Below, piece by piece: positions 4,281 through 54,603 of a DNA stretch of 64,000 bases (positions are counted from its first letter, which is position 1; each line of letters opens with the position of its first letter). This DNA comes from Hypanus sabinus (taxonomy: Eukaryota). The stretch spans positions 16,802,001-16,866,000 of the forward strand of contig NC_082734.1 in assembly GCF_030144855.1 (NCBI RefSeq), written 5' to 3'. The notes beneath the pieces are model-generated. The model made no database searches. It saw only the letters and a program-made list of their open reading frames with translations, and was not told the origin of the DNA. The position numbers were made by a program, and so were the translations under genes.

Positions 4281-7200
4281 TATAAGAATATTTACTCCCC
4301 ATTTACTCAAAATATTTTCATAACCTCAATCTGACTTCTTCTCAACATCTCTCCATATTATGTCACAAAATTTCGTTTCCCGCTCTTGATCTGCAAAATC
4401 AATAAAATGTTTCACAATTTGTTTGTTTCTGTGCAACAAAATAGTCCCTGCTCAGACCTGCATCTCAGGAGAGAGAGTGTAGCAATGAAACAACAGGGAG
4501 CCTCTCTCCTGCTGGGTCTGGCTCCGGTCCCACCAACATCCCACCTCGTTTGTTCTCGGCCGGACGTCCACAGAGAAGCCTTGCCCAAAGTTGCTGCCGT
4601 AAGGTGAGCGTGCCTTGTCCACCAGCTTGTGATGACTGGATGCTCCTCTTTGCCAAACTGGTCGCGGCAATGAGGCCATTACCCCAGTGGTCATCTTACT
4701 GGGAGCCCCAGTGCACAAAATGTCTCCCTTTTTGCTGCTTTGGACAATCTAAGAAGGTGTGGAGATTTCTTTGATCCTAACCTTCCTGAGCTCATTTCTT
4801 GAACCCACCTGTTTTTGCTGTTGCCTTTGGCAACACCTTGAATAATTTTCCCTTGAGCTACTGTCCTGTAATTCCCATCCGTCACCTTCATTCTTGCTTT
4901 GATTTAACCAAGTAGCTAACTTAGTCCACAAATTTAATCGCTCTTTCAAACCACCCAGCTGTAGAATTCTCCACTTTCTCTGTTTAAAGCACCTAGAGAC
5001 CTTTCCACTTGATTGCACTGTGTTAGACCTGAACACAAAGTTGCTGACCAGTGCTGTGCTTAACCTAGATCCTAGGAGCAGGAGGCTTAGAGGTTGAAAC
5101 AGGCTTTTTCATTACGGGGTTGTTCAGAGAAGTAATACGTATATGGAAAGGACCATGATGGACGAATCCAGAACAGAAAGTTATAACCGAGTTACAGTAG
5201 GCTGTTCAGGAAGTGCTTCACACTAAAATGATTAAACCTTGGAGCTCTTTCCTCAAGTGCTCTTGACCAGGAATGGGGAATGACAGTCCTTGCAATTGAA
5301 TTTCCATTGCTGATCACGACATGTTCGAATGCCCTCCTAATTCAGAAGCATTTCGAGAGTTCAATATAGGGAGGTAGGGGTTGGAACAGCTTTACGGGGC
5401 TGAGTGGCCTCTATTGCCCTGCAGTTCCAATGATATTGCTCTGGAAAACCAAAGACCAATTTGGTAAGTTAATTGGTAAATCGGATTATTATCGTCACCT
5501 GTACTGAGGCACATGAAAAACATCATTTTCCAAGCCGTCCATACAAATCATTTCATCGTATCAGTACGCTGGTAGTACAGGAGGAAGGTGATAACAGAAT
5601 ACAGAATAAAGTGTTCCAGTTATAGGGAAAGGGCAGTGCAGGCAGACAATAAGATGCAAGGCCATAATGGGGTAGATTGTGAGGTCAGGAGTCCATCTTC
5701 TCCAGTGCTTTGCTTTTCTTTCAGTTTCTAGCATCTGCAATCTCTTCTGTCTCTGATTATATACGAATTCCAATCAGACATAATCTATCTAAACTGTATA
5801 ATAGGCCTGAGGGGTTGAATAGCCTTTGCCTTTTTCGATATTTACATCTCTAGTGACGAACAAAGTTACACTAGGGCACTCCTTTCACGTCAACCAGCAA
5901 CACACGCAAACTGCTGGAGGAACTCAGCGGCTCAGGCAGCGTCTGTGGAAAAGGGTGAACAGCTGACGTCTTGGGCTGAGACCCTTCTATTTACCATCTT
6001 GGTTTGCTGCTAAATTTCACTTTGCTCTTGCTTTCACGTCATCCATCCTTAACTCTACTCTGTCCTATCTATACCTATCCTTCTGACATGCCTTCCATTC
6101 CCCCCTCACTGTAGCTTCCTGGGATCTCAACTGCACTGATTTTAATATTACCCTCACCTGTCTCCATTCCTCAATGAGATGCTACCATGGAACACATCTT
6201 TCCTTCCCTTCTCAACATCTAATTCAGTGTTCTATCAACCCCAATATCCATAGTCCTTCCCACAGGAGATACAATGCCTGCCCTTACACCTCATCCTTTC
6301 TCACCATACAGGAACCCAAACACAAATCTAGATGATGTTATTGAAGAGATCACATAATCACACTGTAAAATTCTTCGAATGCAGCAAGTGCTCACAATGT
6401 AGTCTCTTCTACAAAGAAGAAACTAAATGAAGAATGAGCAGCCATTGTAGGGCACTTCAGTTCAAACTGCAAGGATAATCCTGAGTTTTCAATTGCTTAT
6501 TACTTTAATTCTCCATCCTACTGTCACTCTGAACACTCTATTATTGGTCTATTGTCCAAAACATACCTGAGGAAAGTTTGAGGAACAGCACCTCAACTAA
6601 ACACCAGACACACATCAGGACCCAACAATTTCAGATAGTCTCCTTTCTAGTCTGGGTCAGAACTGGCCATTTCTGGTAAAAAAAATAAGGAGCAAACTGT
6701 AACGATACTTTAGTTCAAATCTTGCCACACAGATGCTCCCTAGTCAGCTGATCTGATCTGCATGAATCTATTTAGACTTTGCCAACTCCTACCATTGGTG
6801 GGATTTTAATTTTTTTCCCTATTCAGCCTTATTCAGGTCCCCTTTCCCACTTTATTTTTGACTATATGAGTGATACTTCCCACTCAGGCACTGAACCAGA
6901 AAGTATCTTCATCTTTGCTGCCAATTTCCACTCTGCGTGCTGACAACAAGCCATCGTCCTGTGTTCTCCACAACCCGCCAACTCCCACAGCTATCAGGAC
7001 CACACTGCCTCCCACCCTGCTTCCAGATGTTATGTCACATCTGTTCTGATTCCATAGCTCAACTTGAGATACGTCTTCCTTCCAGCATTACCTTTCAGCA
7101 TCAGGGAGTTCGGGTTCTCTCTTTCCAGTACTTGCCCCCTTTCTATTTTACCCCCCCCTCCCTTCCATGGTTCTATAAGCCTTTCCACATGAAGCTGCAT

Positions 7201-10200
7201 TAATTAATAAATAATTTGAACGTCTAACAGCATTTAGATTTGCTGCTCACGATTTGGTTCCCTCCCTTCCGGGGAGAACAAGTACAGACTTGGTGACCAT
7301 TTTTACAAAACACCACTATTCGGGCTGAACAGTAACCCTTGACTTTTGATCAGTTCTCACTTTGAATCTCTCTGTCTACAACCCACTCCATCCTCTTCCC
7401 TCTACAAAGCACAACAGAGTTCAAGAATCAGTTCTCATTTTATGATGAGGCATACTATAACCTTAACTTCTGAAAACTGAGCGATTCTCTTCTAATTTAT
7501 GGTGTCAACAGTGATTTCCTGTGCTAAGTTTAGATCATTATTCTGGTTCTTACCTATCTGGTAAACAGATCCTTTATTTTTTTAATTTGCTTCTTTCAGC
7601 TTATGGTTGTTTTTGTCATATCTTCCAATATGCCAAAAATAATCCCTTTTGTTGTTTCCTCGCCTTCTCACTTTCTATGCAGCTTAACATCTATTTTATG
7701 ACTATAAGACATAGGACCAGAATTAGGCCATTCAGCCCATTGAGTCTGCTCTGCCATTCCATCATGGCTGATTTATTATCATTCTAAATCCTGTTCTCCT
7801 GCCTTCTTGATACCCTTACTAATCCAGAACCTATCAACCTCTGCTTTACACGTACCGAAGCATTTGGCCTCCACAGCCATCTGTGCAATGAATTTCACAG
7901 ATTCACCGCTCTCTGGCGAAGAAATTCCTCCTCATCTCCATTCTAGAGGGGCATCCTTCTTTTCTGAGGTGATAACCTTTCTCTTTTCCAATAATGATGT
8001 CAGATTATTGACTCATGCCTCTCCTTCTAAAGGTATTGCCTACCCACGGAGTGTTTCCAACATAGAAGGGTTAGCAGTCGAGAAGATGGTGACTTGAGGC
8101 TGTGCTGGCCCTATTTAGGGAAACTCAGCATCTCTTTTCCAGCTCTGTTCCTATAGTCCTGCTAACCTTCAACCGCCCATCCCTTCTTCCCCATTAACTA
8201 CCCTCCCCCCTCACTCTCTCAAGAGCCCATCCAGTTCCCTTTTGTTTCAGATTAGGGCAGCACAGTTGTGTAGCACTAGCTACCCGGTCTGTAAGGGGTT
8301 TGTACCTTCTCCCTGTGACCATGTAGGTTTCCTCCAAGTACTCCAGTTTCCTCCCACATTCCAGAAAGACGTACGGCTAGTGGGTTAATTGGTCACATGA
8401 GTGTAATTGGGTGGCTCGGGCTTATTGGGCTGGAAGGGCCCGTTATTGTGCTGTATCTCTCTAAATATAACAAAAACAAAATTTCTAGTGTCAGCATTGT
8501 TTTGCTTCTGTAAGTACTTTAATTGTGCAAGAGTCAATGATGGGGAAGAGGGTGAGAGGACAGGTGGGGCTCCTTTCATCACATCACTGTGAGTTGGATC
8601 AAAGCCAGCTCAAGGAGCTGAAAGGTCAGAGAGGGTAGCCCACTAAAGGAAGCAGCATCAGAACTGAAGGGACCACCGATCAGACAAGCAATGCACAAAG
8701 GGGAAGGCCTACTCAGTGAGGAGGAGGATGCCAAAAAGCTTCTGAACAGGCGACCCAAGGATGGGATGACCAGCTCGGGGTGGAAAGTGAGCATGATCAT
8801 TTTCCATGTTATTGCCTAATGTTTCTATTTTGATGCAGGGGCAGTGAGGGTTTAAGTGGAGGGAATGGACATCCTGTCAGTTCCTGCTGTGTGGTCCTCA
8901 GAACCAGGCCACGTGGTAGGAAATAATCCACGAGTAACTAAAGGCACAGGGACAATAGGCTTCAGAAGACATTTGTACAGGTGCAGGGACTGGAAAGATT
9001 TAGAAGAATATGGGCCAAATGCAGGCAAGCACCTTGTTCAGCACGGATCAGATGGGACAAACGGCACATTTTTCCGTGCTGTATTACTCTGCGTCTCTTC
9101 GACTAATAACTAATACAATTCATTTCCATGGAGATGGTGGGTGGGGTGTGATGCTGGGGGGGGAGGTGAAGGGGAGGACAGAATTGAGAGGATTATGGAG
9201 AAATGGAGAAATGGACAGAGCATGTCAGGAGAACGAGAAAGAATGATGGAGTGAGGAGGGTGAATTGAAGTTAAGATAGTTAAAGTCTGTCCTGAGCCTT
9301 ATAGCCAGCTCCCGTGGCATGAAGCGACTGAGAGTATATGAATGAGACCACCACCCCCCCACCCCCCCGATAGGACACCAATCTATCGCGAGGTTAACCC
9401 TCAGCATTTTGCTGGTACCTGTTTTCAGCTGAGTGGACTGGAGCAATGTGTGGTTAAGTGCCTTGCCTCGGCTGGGGCTCGAACTCACGACCTTCAGATT
9501 GCTAGTCCAACACCCTAACCACTTGGCCACACACCACACATGAAATGAAGTGGATGGGATAATAAGCAGAAGGGTCTGAGTTTGCAGGGAGAGATAGCAA
9601 TTAGGTTTGTGGGAAGTGACAACAAGAGCGAAAGGGGACAAAGATTGTGAGGGGAGAAGGAGGTGAGGGAGGAGAGTGTCTTTACACTGTCACCTTCCTA
9701 ATAGTGACCAGTGTGCAAACATCAGACTCTTCCACCTACTGGGTTACCTTGCAGACAACTTTTCTGCCTGAGGGTTTACGTCACTATCAGAGGTGGCATT
9801 TATTGATGGGACACAGGTCCCAGACATTTTCTGTGAGTGCAAAAGGTCTTGGGGGACCGTTTGGGAGAAGGGAGAGTTCTCTGCGTACCAGCTTGCGATC
9901 AGTACCACAAAAGTACCTGCTCCATCCACTAAAGTGCGGAACTTGGCCGCTCGTAGATTGACTGTACTGATAGAAAACCTCAGCGGGCATGAAATGTCTC
10001 ACAACCTGCAAGCTCCATCTTGCTTCCTGAGCCACACCGTGACTTTCCACAGACTCCTCATCTTGTAAGCAGCAACCAAGGGGTTAAAACCCGGGCAGAG
10101 TTCTGCTGATGCCGATTCCCAGCCTGACTGAGATAACCTAAAGCCACAAGGGAGCAGACTGTGGTCCCTCTTCTCTTGCTGTAGCGGGGAGCAGTGGACA

Positions 10201-10294
10201 ATCCCTGAGGTAATAAAATCAACCAGCCCCAGGGCGGTCTTATTGTGCAAACCCCGTCATGCGAATGGTGGGAGGGACCTGGCGACAAAGACAA

Positions 10295-10335
10295 CCCCTC
10301 GGCACGTCACTAAAGCCCGAGAGGGAGATAAAAGA
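10295..10335 (+). promoter_or_regulatory. Putative HMOX1 core promoter (CACGTCAC CRE/E-box-like motif and GATAAAA TATA-like box)
   Basis: ggcacgtcact at about 10301 and gataaaa at about 10327, roughly 100 nt before the exon-1 ATG. Similar arrangement to the E-box plus TATA-like box of mammalian HMOX1. Confidence 0.45.
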
Positions 10336-10430
10336 GACTGAGGCTGCCCACTTCCAGCAGACGTTTCATCAGGGAGTCCGAGAATCGGAAGCAACGAGGG
10401 GGAAAAGAGCAAGAGGCGAAGACATTCCCC

Positions 10431-10444
10431 ATGGACGCTGAAGG
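10431..10444 (+). CDS. HMOX1: HMOX1 coding exon 1 (MDAE+GG, phase 2)
   Basis: ccccATGG start followed by GG|GTAGGA donor. Phase 2 matches the C-ATG start of exon 2. Lies downstream of CACGTCAC and GATAAAA promoter-like motifs. Confidence 0.7.
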
Positions 10445-13400
10445 GTAGGAGAGAGCGGATCTGAACCAGGACCGAGGCTGGGATTGGGAGCAGGCAGAGT
10501 TAGAGGAAAAAGTGATCCGAGTTTCGGAGCGGATGGGGAACCGGGAGCGGGAGAGGGGATGACAGACAGCAGAGCGGAGGGATTGAACCGGGAGTTAGAG
10601 TAACGGAGTAACCCAAGATCTGCTGTTGGGAGGGGGAGCCCAGGATTTGAGGTTGGGGAGGGAATTAACCTAGGAGATGGAGCGGGGGTGGGGGGTAACC
10701 CAGAGAATGAAACAGTGAGGAGGGGGTAACCCAGGAGATGGAGCGCTGGTTGGGGGTGGGGGTTGTGACCCAGGAGATGGAGGAGTTTGGGGGGGGTGAT
10801 GCAGGAGGTGGAGGGTTTGGGGGTGGGGGTTGTGACCCAGGAGATGGAAGAGTTGGGGGGGGGGTAGTGACCCAGGAGATGGAAGAGTTGGGGGGGGTTG
10901 TGACCCAGGAGATGGAGGAGTTGGGGGGGGGTGATGCAGGAGGTGGAGGGTTTGGGGGTGGGGATTGTGACCCAGGAGATGGAAGAGTTGGGGGGGGGGT
11001 TGTGACCCAGGAGATGGAAGAGTTGGGGGGGGGGGTTGTGACCCAGGAGATGGAAGAGTTGGGGGGGGATTGTGACCCAGGAGATGGAAGAGTTGGGGGG
11101 GGATTGTGACCCAGGAGATGGAGTGGTTTGGGGAGGGGTGATGCAGGAGGTGGAGGGTTTGGGGGTGGGGGTTGTGACCCAGGAAATGGAGTGGTTTGGG
11201 GGGGTGATGCAGGAGATGGAGGGTTTGGAGGGGGTTGTGACCCAGGAATAGGGAGGTTGGGGGGGTTAGAGTAGGGTGGGGGGAGGGAGCCGGAGCCAGA
11301 AGTGAGGCACCCAGGAGTTACAGCAGGAGTGGGGGGACTTACTCAACCTGATTAACTCCTCCTGTCCTGCCCAGGGATGTGTTTAACTAGGATAACTCCC
11401 TGTGTACGGCTGCACTTGACCCAATTTAACTATACCCTTTGACCTCTTTGTCCTAGCATGCCCACCGACTTATCCGAGGCTCTGAAGCTGGCCACAAAGG
11501 AGTCACACGAACTTGCTGAAAACTCCGAATTTATGAGAAACTTCCAGAAGGGTCAGGTCACACGGGATCAGTTTACTGTAAGCATCTACCTTTACAATTC
11601 GGTCAAACCAATATACATGGGGGGGGCGGTTAAGTGGGATGGAACCCCTGCTCAGTGTTATTCCTTCTAGTTTTGATGGTCTCCCTTCAAATGTAGGCCA
11701 TCATCTCTCAGTCAACTTCTAAGGTGACAAGGTGAAAGATCTGGTCAGGGCCAACACTGCTTTACTTTCTTTGAAGTACTACAGTGTGATCTCCCAATCT
11801 CCTGCCTTCAGCAAATATGCCCAATCCGTGTAACCTGTTCTCTCGACCCAGTCCCTCACTACAGAGGCACTTCTGATATGGAATCTGTAGTAATGTGGGA
11901 AAGAAGGCCGCCAATTTGACAGAGGCATGATCCACACTATAGATAAGATTTCCTATCCTTGTGATGTTGATTGAGAAACAAATATGGGCCAGGTTCCCAT
12001 GGAAACTGAATGGATTCTGTGTCAACTGGGCCAATGTAGTGTTTCCTTTGTCAAGTTTGGAAAGAAGGCGGAATCTGATTATCTGGGAAGGCTCACTCTG
12101 ACCCCACCCTTCTTTGTCCCTGTGCCCTCTTTAATGTTACTCTCTCTACCCATACCCCCTCATTCTGAACTGTCATATTCATTCCACCCTCATTCTCTCT
12201 CCCCACGTGCCTTTTCTACATTGTTTGAATAGTGAGTTAAGCCTTGTTTACCAAACTCTCTCTCCCGTCCCCACTCCAGCTGCTACTAGACTCTCTGTAC
12301 TTCATCTACTCTGCCCTGGAGGAGGAGAGTGAGCGAAACAAGGACCACCCAGCCTTCGCCCCCGTCTACTTTCCCTCCGAACTGGATCGGAAGGAAGCCT
12401 TGGAGAAGGACCTGGAATACTTCCATGGGCCGGAGTGGAGGAGCCGCATTCAGTGTCCGAAGGCCACCGAGAAATACGTGAGCCGGATCCGGCACGTGGG
12501 GCGCGAGGAGCCGGAGCTGCTGGTCGCCCACGCCTACATCCGCTACCTGGGGGACCTGTCCGGGGGGCAGGTGCTGAAGAAGGTGGCCCAGAAAGCTTTG
12601 CAGCTGCCGATCACCGGCGAAGGGAGCGCCTTCTTCACCTTCGACCGCGTCACCAACGCCAACAAGTTCAAGCAGCTCTACCGCTCGCGCATGAACACGC
12701 TGGAAGCTGTTGGAGAGACTCGGCAAAGGATCCTGGAAGAGGCAAATAGGACCTTTCAGCTGAACATGGAGGTAAGGGAGAGGTCCTGGTCAAGTATCTC
12801 ACTGGGTGTTTTTAATATTATCAAAGGCCATTTGGATTTGTTTCTGGTGCATGCTCAGCTTTAGTAGGAAAGTTGTTTGTCCTTGGTACAAATAGCTCAC
12901 TAACTTCCTACTGAGGGTTTATGTTTGGCCTGATACTTGAGACTGGTCTCAAACTGCCTCAATTTATTTCCACACTACAGGTTTTCAATGAGCTGCTGCG
13001 GCTGGGAGCTCAGAACCAGAAGGACAGCAACCACCTGAATGGCAGGTAGGACTTCAGCTTGTAACACAGTTATATGCAGAGTGACGCTCCAGCTTCCCAA
13101 GCCAAACAAAAAGTCCCAAAGCCACTCCTTAATATTTAATTTGGTAATTTGGGGGGGAAGGGTATTACAGTTATTGACCCAACAAAATATTGGGTAGGGG
13201 AACCATGTGATGGATGTGATTAGTTGAGAAAGTGAACAGGATACCATAAGGACAGATTAACCACTGAGCTGATCAGTATGGTTCAGTACAAAAGTCTTAG
13301 CTAGGATTCCTAAGACTTTTGCACGGTACTGTATTTGTCAACGTGGAGCGGAGAGCAAGTACGTAAATCTGGTGGGAGCAAGGGACGTTGGGAATGCTGA

Positions 13401-16400
13401 GGGTAGAGTGCCACGGGAGGGTTGTGGGACAGGTGGCAGAGGAGTGCCAGGGACAGAGGTTGGCACAGGTCCAGACATGCCCAACCCTAAGACACCCGGT
13501 ATGGTCAATTGGTTTATTGATATTATAGAATGCCTCTCTCCCTTCCCCCTTTCCCAACCATGATGCCCCCTCTCCCTGCTCCCCTTCCCACTCTCAGTCC
13601 ACAACAGAGACCAATATCAGAATCAGGTTTATCATCACACAGATGTCATGAAATTTATTTTCTTTTTGTTTGAGGCAGCAGTACAGTGCAATAAATAAAA
13701 TTACTACAGTACTGTGCAAAAGTTTTGTCCACTTTATCTATATAGGCCCAAGACTTCTGCATAGTACTGTACAAGTATCACTCATTCTCTGTCCTTTGCC
13801 CAAGTGGAGCACGATGACAACAAACCTACTGGACTCGGGAGGCACACAAGATGGATGGGGAAGAGCAAGAAGGGGGCTTCCTCAATCCAAACCCAAATTA
13901 GTCACTTAAAATGCCCAGATAAAGGTTTAGCGAAAAGTGCTCTTCATGCATTGCGGTCCCCATGGATGAGATTGCTGTCCTCAAATTGATATCTGCTACA
14001 TGGTAATCCATCCCCACTTCACACCAGCCACGCTTTGGTGTCCAATGTTGGTAAACCCAGCATTTCCCGGTGGTGAGGAGGCCAAGCAGCAGGTGACTGA
14101 ACTACTGCAGTGTGAGTTGGAGAGGAAGTGGGTAGGAGTTGTAATCTAATACAACATCCTGAATTGGAGAATGGGCTGGCAGGAAAGGTGTGTGCCCACA
14201 CAGCTCTGGGTCGAGATAGGCAGAGGGTATTAATTCCCTGTCGTGGATTGGGGAGCGTAGAATAGCACAAAAGACACCAGAATGCCTCGGCATTGCCCTG
14301 GGTTGAACCAGAGGCATAATTGAACTCTGGCCTTTAAAACACTGAGCAGAGATCCGAAAGTGTACACTGGGAAAGGCTTGGTGTACTCGCGTTCACAGCT
14401 GAATAAGCTTCTATTTCCCTCCATAAAGCTATTGGTTGGAAGAGAACTAATCAGGAATTGTGCATGTGCTTTGGAGATGGGTCTGTTTGAACCAAGGAGT
14501 TTGTCTGTGGAGACTGAACTGACATTGGACTCATCCAAACTAATTCCCTTTCGACTTCTTCCTTCAGCATGCCCAGTGACCTGTCAGAAGCTCTGAAGCT
14601 GGCCACAAAGGAGTCCCATGAATTGGCCGAAAATTCTGAGTTCATGAGGAACTTCCAGAAGGGACAGGTCACCAAAGATCAATTTACAGTAAGGATACGA
14701 GAACGTACCATTCTCTTAGTTTGAAGTTGGACTGTAATTATATATCCTGTTTCATATTTTCTTCATTGTTTGGCCTGCACTTGGCCCATCCCTTCTCTTT
14801 TTCTATCCTTCCCACATCTCTCTTCCCTAAGTTCAGCTGGTCTTGCTGCTTTCTTGTGTGGGGTGGTAAGACAAATGTTTGTAATACACTAGTTGAGAGC
14901 AGCTAATTCTGACCAAGGATGAAACGGAGAGGTACAACTGATCAGTAGAGCATAATACCAACTCGAGGAGGATGTGGGAGAAGGCCTCTTATGATTCTCC
15001 GCGTATACCATATTCCTTTAATACAGCCTCTGCTGCATTGTTTCTCGAATGAGCACTCTTTCAATATTGGTTACAAATCTGGCTCTCAGATCAATGAATT
15101 CAGAACCATGGGAGTTCTTTTTCTACCTTCCCCTTTGTGTTCAATTCTGGTCACCTCATTATAGGAAGGATGTGGCAGCTATGGAGAGGGTGCAGAGGAG
15201 ATCTACCAGGATGTTGCCTGGTTTGGAGAACAAGTCATATGAAGCAAGGTTAGCAGAGCTGGGACTTTTCCCTTTGGACCGTAGAAGAATGAGAGGGGAC
15301 TTGACAGAGGTCTACAAGATTGAGAGGCATAGATAGGGTGGATAGTCAGCAACTGTTTTCCAGGGCACCAATAGCAAACACCAGGGGGCATATGTACAAA
15401 ATTAAGGGAGGGGAGTTTAGTGGAGACATCAGGGGTAAGTTTTTTTACACAGAGGGTTGTGAGTGCCTGGAATGACTTGCCAGGGATGGTGGTGGAGGCT
15501 GAAACATTAGGGGTATTTAAGAGCCTCTTGGACAGGCACATGGATGAAAGAAAAATGGAGGGTTATGGGGTAGTGTGGGTTTAGTACTTTGTTTTAAGGA
15601 TTATATGGGTTGGCACAACATGGAGGGCTGAAGGGCCTGTACTGTGCTGTAGTGTTCTATGGTTCTATAGTACCCTCGTATTGCTGGCAATCTCACTGAG
15701 CTGAGCCAATGTCTACTCTGCCCTCTCCCTCTGTCCTTTCCCATGTTGATACTCCAGTCATGAGTCAAGCCTTGTTTACCAAACTCTCTCTTCCATCCCC
15801 GCTGCAGATGCTACTAGACTCTCTGTACTTCATCTACTCTGCCCTGGAGGAGGAGAGTGAGCGAAACAAGGACCACCCAGCCTTCGCCCCCGTCTACTTT
15901 CCCTCCGAACTGGATCGGAAGGAAGCCTTGGAGAAGGACCTGGAATACTTCCATGGGCCGGAGTGGAGGAGCCGCATTCAGTGTCCGAAGGCCACCGAGA
16001 AATACGTGAGCCGGATCCGGCACGTGGGGCGCGAGGAGCCGGAGCTGCTGGTCGCCCACGCCTACATCCGCTACCTGGGGGACCTGTCCGGGGGGCAGGT
16101 GCTGAAGAAGGTGGCCCAGAAAGCTTTGCAGCTGCCGATCACCGGCGAAGGGAGCGCCTTCTTCACCTTCGACCGCGTCACCAACGCCAACAAGTTCAAG
16201 CAGCTCTACCGCTCGCGCATGAACACGCTGGAAGCCGTCGGAGAGACTCGGCAAAGGATCCTGGAAGAGGCAAATAGGACCTTTCAGCTGAATGTGGAGG
16301 TAAGACGTGCTGAATGCTACGTAACCAGGAACCACAGTTTCTGGTTAAATTTGTATGCTCTGTGGGTCAGCAAATCATTTAAGTCTGGCAGTGTGCAGCG

Positions 16401-18249
16401 GTGGTTCTGCTCATATCTGTATGTTCTATTTTTTGTTTCAAACACTGCAGAGGATGTAACCTCACTCTGACTAATACAATGATGGAACATGTCACAAATC
16501 CTCTCTGCACCACCTCCATCCTAACCGACAATGAAATTATTCTGAAAATACTTTTTTTTTAAAAAAACAACAACTACAGATGCTGGCAATCTGAAATATC
16601 CGCAGTTCTGAGAAAGGGTCACAGACATGAAGGTTTGACTGATCTGAATTTTTTTTTCTCTCTTTTCTGCAGCATTTTCAGTTTTTGCGATTACTTAAAC
16701 CTTTTTTTTGATGGGATGGGAAGACGTTTTGTGGTTTTTCACATACAGTGCGGAGGGGATGCAGTGATCTTATCAGACCATGGTATCCCTTTAGCTAGTC
16801 CAGAACTCCTGCCCAGTTCTCCACTCGACCTTCCGGGAGGGCGTTCCACCACTGCTCCTTTGATTCAAAGGCGTGTATGCTGCTACCCAGCTCAAGTCAA
16901 CCTCTCGAGCCAAAGTGTCCAGTTAGCTAGTCCAGAACTCCAACTCGCTGTCGTCTCACTAAGACCTTCCAGAAGGGAGTTCCACCACTGCAGCTTGGAT
17001 TCAGAGGCAGGAATGCTGCCACCCAGCAAAAGGCTCGCTCCAGTAGCCAGGCTTGCATGGCAATGTATTTCGTGTAGTACGGATGGGGGGTGGGGGGGGG
17101 AAGAATGATAATTGGTTTACTTATAGTCGCTTCCTCCACCCCATCCCCAACCCTCCCCCACCACCACCGTACTGCTGACACCTTGTGGATGGGGTGACCC
17201 TGTATCCTTCGATTCCCTGTCCAAATGTTGACCATAATATTTAAATATAGCATCCCAGCAGTCAGGCAATGGAATATTTCCTGCCAACTTGAACAACAGT
17301 GGTCAATTGTATCCCTTTTACTTGTTTTAAAGATCAGCTGCTCCGAACCTCTTTGGGGGTTGGAGCCCAGCCTTTTCGGACTATGCCACATTGATTTGAG
17401 TTGCTCAAAACATCCCTTCCCACCCTTCCTTAAACCACCATTTCGCGCCCCCCCCCCCCAAGTGGCAGCTGCATCCTTTGGAATAAAAACCGCTCTTCGT
17501 TTCCAATTGCAGGTTTTCAATGAACTCCAGAGACTGAGCTCTGGGTCAGAGAGAAATGGCACTGTGCACGAGAGTGAGATCCGGAAACGTACCGTTTTTC
17601 AGGGTAAGGGAAATGCGAGGGGGCATAACTTTGTATGGAAGATGCCGGGCGGGGGGGGGGGGGGGGTGTTGATTCTAGTGGATGATCGGAAAGGAGAACT
17701 CTAATGGTGGGTCAGTGGGTGGAAATAGGATGGGTTACTAACCCTAGCCCAGCCTAGGAGTCAAATAACAAAAGGAGGGCAAAAGGAGGGCGTAGAAACA
17801 AATCGAATACAAAGGCTTGCATGAGGATAAAACAATATTCGGTTTTAACGTAAACACAATGATTCTTGCAACCACTGGCATAGGAAATTCTGCAAATCTT
17901 GGAAATCTTGGACAATGCACACAAAATGCTGCAGGAACTCCCAAGTTGGGCAGTGTCTGTGGAGGGGAATAAACAGTCGGCCTGAAACATCATAGGTTAT
18001 TTCCCTCCAAGTTGCCTGACTTGCCAACTTCCTCCAGCATGTTTGTGTATTACTTACAACCACTGGCTAGTCATAATTAACCAATGACAGTAATCTGCTT
18101 TCTTCACAGAACGGGCAGTGCACAAAAGGAACACCCCAGATCTGCCTTCACAACCACACGATTTGCTGGCAGACAGTCCCAGCCTGCGATTCGCTCTCTT
18201 TTTTGGCTTGGTGGTAGTATCACTTGGCTTTGGATGGTATCTGCTGTGA
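10431..18249 (+). CDS. HMOX1: Heme oxygenase 1 with internally duplicated catalytic domain; 8 coding exons join(10431..10444,11457..11577,12280..12771,12981..13045,14568..14688,15808..16299,17513..17603,18110..18249) = 1536 nt, 511 aa
   Basis: Two copies of the HO motifs (proximal His in KESHELAE; [14 protein letters not shown]; [11 protein letters not shown]). Exon sizes 121/492 match the HMOX1 structure. All introns are GT-AG with continuous phase. Single C-terminal hydrophobic tail. Lies upstream of MCM5 as in other vertebrates. Gene identity is firm; the fused two-domain splice model is inferred. Confidence 0.85.
10665..11270. repeat. G-rich minisatellite (about 30-bp unit GTGACCCAGGAGATGGAAGAGTTGGGGGGGG) in HMOX1 intron 1
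   Basis: More than 15 imperfect copies, with a GTGATGCAGGAGGTGGAGGGTTTGGGG variant interspersed. Confidence 0.9.
11457..11577 (+). CDS. HMOX1: HMOX1 exon 2, domain A ([40 protein letters not shown])
   Basis: tcctag|C acceptor and |gtaagc donor; 121 nt; contains the heme-ligand His. Confidence 0.95.
12280..12771 (+). CDS. HMOX1: HMOX1 exon 3, domain A
   Basis: ctccag| acceptor, GAG|gtaagg donor; 492 nt; YLGDLSGG distal helix. Confidence 0.95.
12981..13045 (+). CDS. HMOX1: HMOX1 shortened exon 4, domain A / inter-domain linker ([21 protein letters not shown]+AG)
   Basis: ctacag| acceptor; homologous to 17513-17603 (VFNEL..RL..NG); CAG|gtagga donor in phase 2. Confidence 0.8.
13283..13772. 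mobile_element. Tc1-derived non-autonomous element in the intron between HO domain A and domain B
   Basis: Inverted copies of CAGTACTGTGCAAAAGTCTT-like termini at about 13284, 13313-13333, 13706-13726 and 13751-13772. Confidence 0.55.
14568..14688 (+). CDS. HMOX1: HMOX1 exon 2, domain B ([40 protein letters not shown])
   Basis: ccttcag|C acceptor, |gtaagg donor; 121 nt; 38/40 aa identical to the domain A exon. Confidence 0.95.
15135..15668 (+). mobile_element. CR1 LINE 3' end in the domain-B intron 2
   Basis: [31 protein letters not shown]...[14 protein letters not shown], followed by a TTCTATGGTTCTAT tail. Absent from the paralogous domain-A intron. Confidence 0.9.
15808..16299 (+). CDS. 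HMOX1: HMOX1 exon 3, domain B
   Basis: ctgcag| acceptor, GAG|gtaaga donor; 492 nt; near-identical to 12280-12771. Confidence 0.95.
17513..17603 (+). CDS. HMOX1: HMOX1 exon 4, domain B ([30 protein letters not shown]+G)
   Basis: ttgcag| acceptor, G|gtaagg donor in phase 1 as in canonical HMOX1 exon 4. Confidence 0.9.
18110..18249 (+). CDS. HMOX1: HMOX1 exon 5, C-terminal membrane anchor (...[25 protein letters not shown])
   Basis: ttcacag| acceptor, phase-1 compatible, hydrophobic tail ending at TGA 18247-18249. AATAAA at 19111-19116. Confidence 0.9.

Positions 18250-32155: not shown

Positions 32156-54603
<22,448 letters not shown>

Follow-up and report, generated by a model that had tools for sequence, protein, structure and literature searches.

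In a 64,000-nucleotide (nt) stretch of the stingray Hypanus sabinus genome (NC_082734.1 of RefSeq assembly GCF_030144855.1, positions 16,802,001 to 16,866,000 of the forward strand; hereafter the window), we identified eight coding exons for a heme oxygenase-1 (HO-1) that carries two catalytic domains in a single polypeptide instead of the one found in vertebrate HO-1. The exons lie between positions 10431 and 18249 on the + strand and probably form one transcription unit, the orthologue of HMOX1 upstream of MCM5, whose default eight-exon mRNA would encode a tail-anchored, two-core enzyme of 511 amino acids (aa). To our knowledge, HO-1, a much-studied stress enzyme, has been treated throughout as a single-domain, tail-anchored, membrane-bound oligomer. 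The features of the locus, in which the two copies of exons 2 to 4 (e2 to e4) are called A and B, are as follows:

10431-10444, + strand: coding part of exon 1 (e1), 14 nt, the ATG plus 11 nt (MDAE-G), with donor GG/gtagga in phase 2.
11457-11577, + strand: e2A, 121 nt, proximal helix of domain A, carrying His22.
12280-12771, + strand: e3A, 492 nt, catalytic core of domain A, with GDLSGG at residues 136-141.
12981-13045, + strand: e4A, the linker exon, 65 nt, with donor CAG/gtagga in phase 2.
13046-14567, + strand: intron between the domain units, in which no exon, promoter or anchor relic was detected.
14568-14688, + strand: e2B, 121 nt, proximal helix of domain B, carrying His248, with the strong acceptor ttccttcag/C.
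15808-16299, + strand: e3B, 492 nt, catalytic core of domain B, with GDLSGG at residues 362-367.
17513-17603, + strand: e4B, 91 nt, the canonical exon 4, phase 1.
18110-18249, + strand: e5, 140 nt, the stalk, the single C-terminal transmembrane tail anchor and a TGA stop.

All the exon borders are canonical GT-AG, and the chain e1-2A-3A-4A-2B-3B-4B-5 adds up to 1536 nt that translate to the 511 aa without an internal stop. The initial annotation of this stretch, made from the sequence letters, had described exons 2-3-4 as duplicated between a single 5' coding exon and a single transmembrane exon; the coordinates agree, as does a tblastn search of the 64-kb window with the whole protein, which matched these eight exons only. 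It had also reported no transmembrane exon between 13046 and 14567, where our tblastn searches likewise found neither an anchor-exon-like nor an e4B-like sequence (best E 0.35 for the anchor), and a first exon 4 of 65 nt with a phase-2 donor, followed in a stop-free frame by a second that ends in phase 1. Its description of the locus, including the retention in both domains of the proximal His and the GDLSGG motif, was confirmed in every detail. The two domain units are joined in the translated chain as NHLNG-S-MPSDL. The linker exon consists of the start of exon 4, which encodes the end of the last core helix, and then of about 12 residues of flexible linker. Direct joining of e4A to e5 is out of frame, and the only in-frame partner of e4A is e2B. 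The skipped chains e1-2B-3B-4B-5 and e1-2A-3A-4B-5 are both open, with 285 aa each.

The 511-aa chain is, residue for residue, the RefSeq protein XP_059809766.1 (heme oxygenase 1a, Hypanus sabinus), and the gene model is thus already public. This identity of the exon chain, together with the conservation across elasmobranchs described below, supports at the sequence level the proposal of the initial annotation that the locus encodes a covalent tandem of two HO domains. XP_059809766.1 sits in a 90% cluster around a Mobula protein. Its relatives were reached by a profile-free search with exon 3, which led to proteins with 2-4 HO domains, the best of those followed being a 532-aa protein of Mustelus. 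Downstream of the gene, on the + strand at 50316-54603, are the MCM5 exons (matches to MCM_lid and MCM5_C). MCM5 also adjoins the multi-domain HO gene in Mustelus and in the bowfin Amia, and this neighbourhood fits orthology with HMOX1 (hmox1a). The human HMOX1 gene likewise has MCM5 beside it.

Both domains are complete. The Pfam family PF01126 matched two full-length stretches of the protein, the best of which covers profile positions 2-204 of 204 (E 2.7e-160). Across 14 elasmobranch sequences there is no variation at twelve residues of domain A (K15, H22, Y55, Y131, R133, G136, D137, G140, G141, K176, R180, and N207) or at the 12 equivalent residues of domain B. By alignment of domain B to full-length human HO-1, they correspond to K18, H25, Y58, Y134, R136, G139, D140, G143, G144, K179, R183, and N210, whose functional roles are those known from the HO-1 literature. 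His248 aligns to His25 of the human structure 6eha_A, and the distal-helix motifs G136-D137-L-S-G140-G141 and G362-D363-L-S-G366-G367, both invariant, are equivalent to human G139, D140, G143, and G144. Exon e5 aligns with human HO-1 residues 266-287 (6eha_A), and it is the one anchor exon in the window. The stingray protein therefore shares with human HMOX1 (PDB 1N3U, 6EHA) the HO fold, the His25 equivalent, the glycines and Asp of the distal helix and the tail anchor, with about 65% of the residues identical; the difference is that mammals have one core per anchor, while the stingray has two cores per polypeptide, joined by the short linker exon.

No Cys-Pro heme regulatory motif of the HO-2 type was present in residues 436-488. 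Cys-Pro pairs occur only within the cores (C104-P105 and C330-P331) and are invariant in the 14 elasmobranch sequences. The core Cys-Pro is also part of the majority consensus of a 60-sequence vertebrate alignment and is absent from human HO-1.

A structure model was obtained with AlphaFold2 from the 60-sequence alignment, since a run with 14 near-identical sequences gave a mean predicted local distance difference test score (pLDDT) of 39.8 and was unusable. The model has a mean pLDDT of 83.9, with both cores at 85-98. When compared by Foldseek with human HO-1 and HO-2, each core gave a target TM-score of 0.95-0.98, with a root mean square deviation of about 1 Å. Values below 50 were obtained for the linker (residues 223-231) and the stalk (448-486), and a helix was predicted at 489-510. 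The predicted TM-score of the whole chain was 0.47, from which it follows that the model does not predict how the two heads are oriented relative to each other; it depicts them as two beads on a string, between which no fixed contact is predicted.

The layout is not confined to Hypanus. Multi-domain models named heme oxygenase 1a or 1-like are present for nearly every annotated elasmobranch; the automated models with this layout represent 21 species of ten elasmobranch orders and have between 2 and 5 domains. The initial annotation had proposed that it be sought at other shark and ray loci, and exact spliced mapping of public proteins onto the genomic loci of Mobula, Amblyraja, Leucoraja, Heterodontus, and Mustelus showed it in the independent assemblies of all five:

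Hypanus (window): e1 14 nt, e4A 65 nt, 2 domains.
Mobula: e1 14 nt, e4A 65 nt, 2 domains.
Amblyraja: e1 14 nt, e4A 65 nt, 2 domains.
Leucoraja: e1 14 nt, e4A 65 nt, 3 domains.
Heterodontus: e1 44 nt, e4A 65 nt, 2 domains.
Mustelus: e1 56 nt, e4A 53 nt, 2 domains.

The six species share the exon plan e1-[e2-e3-linker exon]n-e2-e3-e4-e5, with e2 of 121 nt, e3 of 492 nt, and e1 and e4A both ending in phase 2. This plan, the phase-2 linker exon and the concerted evolution of exon 3 described below are common to the stingray model and to automated models of other elasmobranchs such as XP_072127869.1 (Mobula birostris), XP_032869067.1 (Amblyraja radiata), XP_078093687.1 (Mustelus asterias), and XP_041033773.1 (Carcharodon carcharias). 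In six of six species the linker exon has a polypyrimidine-AG acceptor and a full consensus donor, CAG/GTAAGA or CAG/GTAGGA (CAG/GTRRGA), and the only change in its length is one of 12 nt. The e2B acceptor is kept in all the mapped species, and the first full codon of e2B is GTG in Mobula, both species of which have Val there; Rhinoraja has a deletion of three residues at this point. An independent annotation in Chiloscyllium, a partial model, also joins e4A to e2B.

The linker, measured from the end of exon 3 to DLSEAL, could be obtained for 20 of the 21 species models, the low-quality model of Scyliorhinus canicula giving none. It is 25 aa long in batoids, Hexanchiformes, Pristiophoriformes, and Heterodontus, while orectolobiform, lamniform, and carcharhiniform sharks have a linker that is four codons shorter (21 aa) and Rhinoraja has one of 22 aa; all the length differences are of whole codons, and the 25- and 21-aa forms track phylogeny. 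Most species have two domains, but there are three in Leucoraja, Pristis, Heptranchias, and Cetorhinus, four in Carcharodon and five in Stegostoma, so that the number differs from that of Hypanus in some species, and even among relatives (whale shark 2 and zebra shark 5; basking shark 3 and white shark 4; two skates 2 and 3). The internal linkers are always of the e4A type, and e4B and the anchor are confined to the last unit. No single-domain elasmobranch HO-1 model was found in the 90% clusters or in the two length ranges searched, outside which lie lengths of 288-292 aa.

The exons of the two domain units have diverged to different extents. Copies e3A and e3B of Hypanus differ at only 5 of 492 nt, within a longer pair of near-identical tracts:

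12233-12776, + strand: gene-conversion tract of copy A, exon 3 plus 47 nt of the upstream intron.
15761-16304, + strand: gene-conversion tract of copy B, the counterpart of 12233-12776.

The tracts are 98.2% identical over 544 nt, and the remaining intron sequence is unalignable. In five species, e3A and e3B were 98.2-99.4% identical within species and 81-93% identical between species, and in a tree of exon 3 each A copy groups with the B copy of its own species (support 99-100% in four species and 88% in Mobula). Exon 3 of Hypanus and of the other species compared is thus under concerted evolution through gene conversion. The exon 2 copies, on the other hand, have only 80-81% DNA identity, with 23 of 120 sites different, although 38 of the 40 whole codons specify the same residue. 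The proportions of synonymous and nonsynonymous differences between them (pS 0.78 and pN 0.037, respectively) indicate that the copies are old and that both are under purifying selection. As the ray e2A copies form a clade separate from the ray e2B copies in the exon-2 tree, where the shark copies are unresolved, the duplication predates the ray radiation. The linker exon common to sharks and rays, rather than this tree, would place it before the shark-ray split.

Outside the exons, a single stretch of the locus aligned with that of the skate Amblyraja (77%):

10256-10336, + strand: proximal promoter and 5' leader block, 95-175 nt upstream of the ATG, with an E-box-like CACGTCAC and a TATA-like GATAAAAG.

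The ratio of observed to expected CpG was 0.58-0.65 at 10200-10799, versus 0-0.40 in the intron before e2B, so that CpG enrichment was confined to e1, and no conserved block was found in 13052-14533 against Amblyraja, Heterodontus, or Mustelus. Exon e4A itself aligned with Amblyraja and Heterodontus, while its flanking introns did not. Because all the introns are short (209-1522 nt), with good splice sites, the inclusion of every exon is expected to be the default, and the strong, conserved acceptor of e2B marks it as an internal exon. The strongest argument, however, comes from the linker exon: since it joins in frame only to e2B, its conservation from rays to sharks as an open, spliceable phase-2 exon argues that the fused frame is the one on which selection acts and which it maintains. 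We infer from these features that the fused mRNA is the main product.

Several observations weigh against this reading. The coding constraint on e4A is moderate, with a pN/pS ratio of about 0.3-0.6 over 63 nt. The e1 donor is in phase 2 as well, so that skipping by an e1 to e2B or an e3A to e4B splice would yield an ordinary 285-aa enzyme, and in Ensembl the arowana Scleropages has, in addition to a 530-aa form, single-domain isoforms of 287 aa. A search with a 91-aa skate piece that covers the junction recovered no junction-spanning transcript: its four candidates were three gene-model or genomic pieces with exon 2 but without e4A, and the partial Chiloscyllium model. The only elasmobranch transcript contig found, from a skate (L009, Logan SRR13269345), begins inside e2B. 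In principle, the automated models of RefSeq and other sources could also have chained the exons merely because the frame is open. Positions 1-20 of the skate contig are Nextera adapter sequence (GATGTGTATAAGAGACAG), which shows that the 5' end of the contig was created during library preparation and does not mark where transcription starts.

If splicing mostly skipped one of the two units, the main product would be a 285-aa HO-1, with the 511-aa form minor or unproductive. The open skipped chains, the phase-2 donors shared by e1 and e4A, and the short isoforms listed for the double-domain gene of Scleropages are all in keeping with such alternative use. Skipping would nevertheless leave e4A useless, yet its acceptor, donor, frame, and phase have been kept from rays to sharks; added to its single in-frame partner, to the short introns with good splice sites, which favour inclusion, and to the lack of any annotated single-domain isoform for the 21 elasmobranchs in the ranges and clusters examined, this makes the alternative use of the units unlikely. 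It is more improbable still that copy A mainly produces a soluble, anchor-less HO-1 of 231 aa by read-through of the e4A donor, with copy B expressed only via transcripts that skip A. Reading through the donor does give AGG TAG, an Arg followed by a stop, and the intron beyond contains one AATAAA, at 13690. Such a stop, however, is made by any phase-2 AG/GTAA or AG/GTAG donor and is present in all the mapped species, so that it arises automatically and is no evidence of a designed switch; donor positions that are irrelevant to the stop are also conserved (-1 G, +1 G, and +5 G), and the AATAAA lies in sequence that is unalignable with the skate and shark loci. A transcript that retained this intron and then spliced the downstream exons would, moreover, be expected to be a target of nonsense-mediated decay.

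We consider very improbable an arrangement of two neighbouring genes, a truncated A followed by a B that would begin at the e2B ATG and be driven by a separate promoter. The opening of Hypanus e2B, AG/C ATG, would suit it; against it stand the 1.5 kb before e2B, which have neither conservation nor CpG enrichment, the conserved e2B acceptor, the replacement of the start codon by Val in both Mobula species and its loss in Rhinoraja, and the fact that gene A would have no anchor exon. Least credible of all is a segment falsely duplicated during assembly. The exon-3 copies are 99% identical, as a false duplicate would be, but identity falls to 81% between the copies of exon 2, those of exon 4 match neither in length nor in sequence, and the introns are unalignable. 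The window has no gaps (no N), the Mobula locus is collinear with it across the whole gene, and four further independent assemblies agree; the divergence of exon 2 and the recurrence of the structure in five other species thus show that the second copy is no assembly duplicate.

The preferred explanation, one transcription unit with a two-core product, would have come about as follows. Exons 2 to 4 would have been duplicated within the gene long ago to give the present layout, with the first copy of exon 4 shortened to a linker exon; as the donor of the latter has the same phase as that of exon 1, it can splice in frame onto the second exon 2. One promoter would give one pre-mRNA, in which all the exons are included by default, and its product would have two near-identical cores connected by some 9-12 flexible residues, then a disordered stalk, and finally one anchor helix in the endoplasmic reticulum. 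Each head would use its own His to bind one heme and would degrade it independently of the other head. The outer one, farther from the membrane by one domain and a short linker, would receive electrons from cytochrome P450 reductase by ordinary collision. HO-1 in soluble, truncated form works with this reductase in vitro. In engineered fusions of HO-1 and NADPH-cytochrome P450 reductase (PDB 6J79, 6J7A, 6J7I), which by their titles were crystallised, a folded domain is attached through a C-terminal linker of 13-17 residues. These constructs are artificial, and their partner is the reductase and not a second HO core, but together with the activity of the truncated enzyme they lead us to expect that the outer head can be reduced by collision. 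The variable number of domains and the continual homogenisation of exon 3 fit unequal exchange in an array selected for catalytic dosage per anchor, and suggest that it is this dosage, rather than any special cooperation between the heads, that has been selected.

Tandem HO domains were also found outside the elasmobranchs. Double or triple models are present in bowfin, eels, tarpon, conger, arapaima, elephantfish, and arowana; like the stingray protein, those of Amia ocellicauda (XP_066563488.1), Anguilla, Megalops, Conger, Arapaima, Brienomyrus, and Scleropages have HO domains in tandem, near-identical repeats, and one C-terminal anchor. The linker of Amia, however, is unlike that of elasmobranchs, being a 59-nt exon that combines the start of exon 4 with the end of exon 1. 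In the triple-domain HO-1a of this fish (L010, linker exons at 4693-4751 and 6302-6360), the linker exons match exon 4 at their starts, whereas their last 9 nt, the donor, and the 10 intron bases that follow are the same as in exon 1. This comparison provides direct evidence that an unequal exchange involving exons 4 and 1 gave rise to the Amia repeat, an event that would explain why the linker exon inherited the phase of exon 1. A similar derivation was considered for the 3' end of the elasmobranch linker exon, but the resemblance to exon 1 is weak (xDS, donor GTAGGA) and it is not claimed. The European eel Anguilla anguilla (L007, 8576-9057) has two linker exons in succession, of 106 nt (phase 1) and 52 nt (ending in phase 2), its exon 3 is split into 216 + 273 nt, and eels have two double-domain genes (541 and 529 aa). 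These differing linkers suggest that the layout of ray-finned fish had a separate origin or was remodelled.

A multi-domain HO mRNA also exists in nature, as an RNA-derived, chiton-like contig (L008, 948-3905; Logan SRR26493809) contains an unbroken open reading frame of 985 aa with four HO domains and a hydrophobic tail. The chiton protein XP_064613781.1 (Liolophura sinensis) resembles that of the stingray in its tandem of full-length HO domains and C-terminal hydrophobic tail, but it comes from an invertebrate, shares only about 53% identity, and clearly had a separate origin. In fungi, Basidiobolus ranarum and B. meristosporus have HO proteins of 796 aa (three HO stretches) and 818 aa (multi-domain).

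The initial annotation had regarded this architecture as one not known from vertebrates. This can be upheld only for the literature, as full-text searching brought up no publication that deals with multi-domain heme oxygenases or with the structure of shark or ray HO-1, whereas automated models with 2-5 domains exist for the 21 elasmobranchs, bowfin, eels, tarpon, and arowanas. Multi-domain HO-1 is thus real and widespread, if apparently unremarked, and its novelty is lower than had been claimed. More broadly, it seems to us somewhat more probable than the contrary that HO-1 is natively multi-headed in sharks and rays, with 2-5 domains per anchor shaped by unequal exchange and gene conversion, and separately so in bowfin, eels, and bony-tongues, with at least two vertebrate origins by fusion of exon 4 to exon 1, in addition to those of the chiton and the fungus. 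If so, HO-1 would be an unusual case of enzyme dosage tuned by the copy number of a domain within one polypeptide. A natural covalent tandem would also offer a test case for whether oligomerisation matters for stability, for the distance from the membrane that is compatible with reduction by P450 reductase and with product transfer to biliverdin reductase, and for how gene conversion keeps enzyme repeats identical. In practical terms, fish HMOX1 database entries of 500-1200 aa are probably genuine, and it would be wrong to cut them down as mis-fusions.

Some minor features of the window may be added. ARAGORN detected no tRNA genes in it. Intron 1 contains a G-rich minisatellite (10648-11265) in which a unit of 30-36 nt is repeated about 18 times, with runs of at least 8 G on the coding strand; it starts 200 nt past exon 1, and Mobula has a matching array in the corresponding position (L001, 10277-10789). 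The intron that separates the domain units contains, at 13270-13340, an inverted repeat of 31 nt whose arms are 74% complementary and 9 nt apart, and related sequence recurs near 13700-13780, so that it looks like a small foldback element. Finally, intron 2B harbors an interspersed repeat (15136-15680), with copies in the Heterodontus locus (L003, 12824-13371) and several in that of Mustelus, which is probably the tail of an old elasmobranch retroposon.

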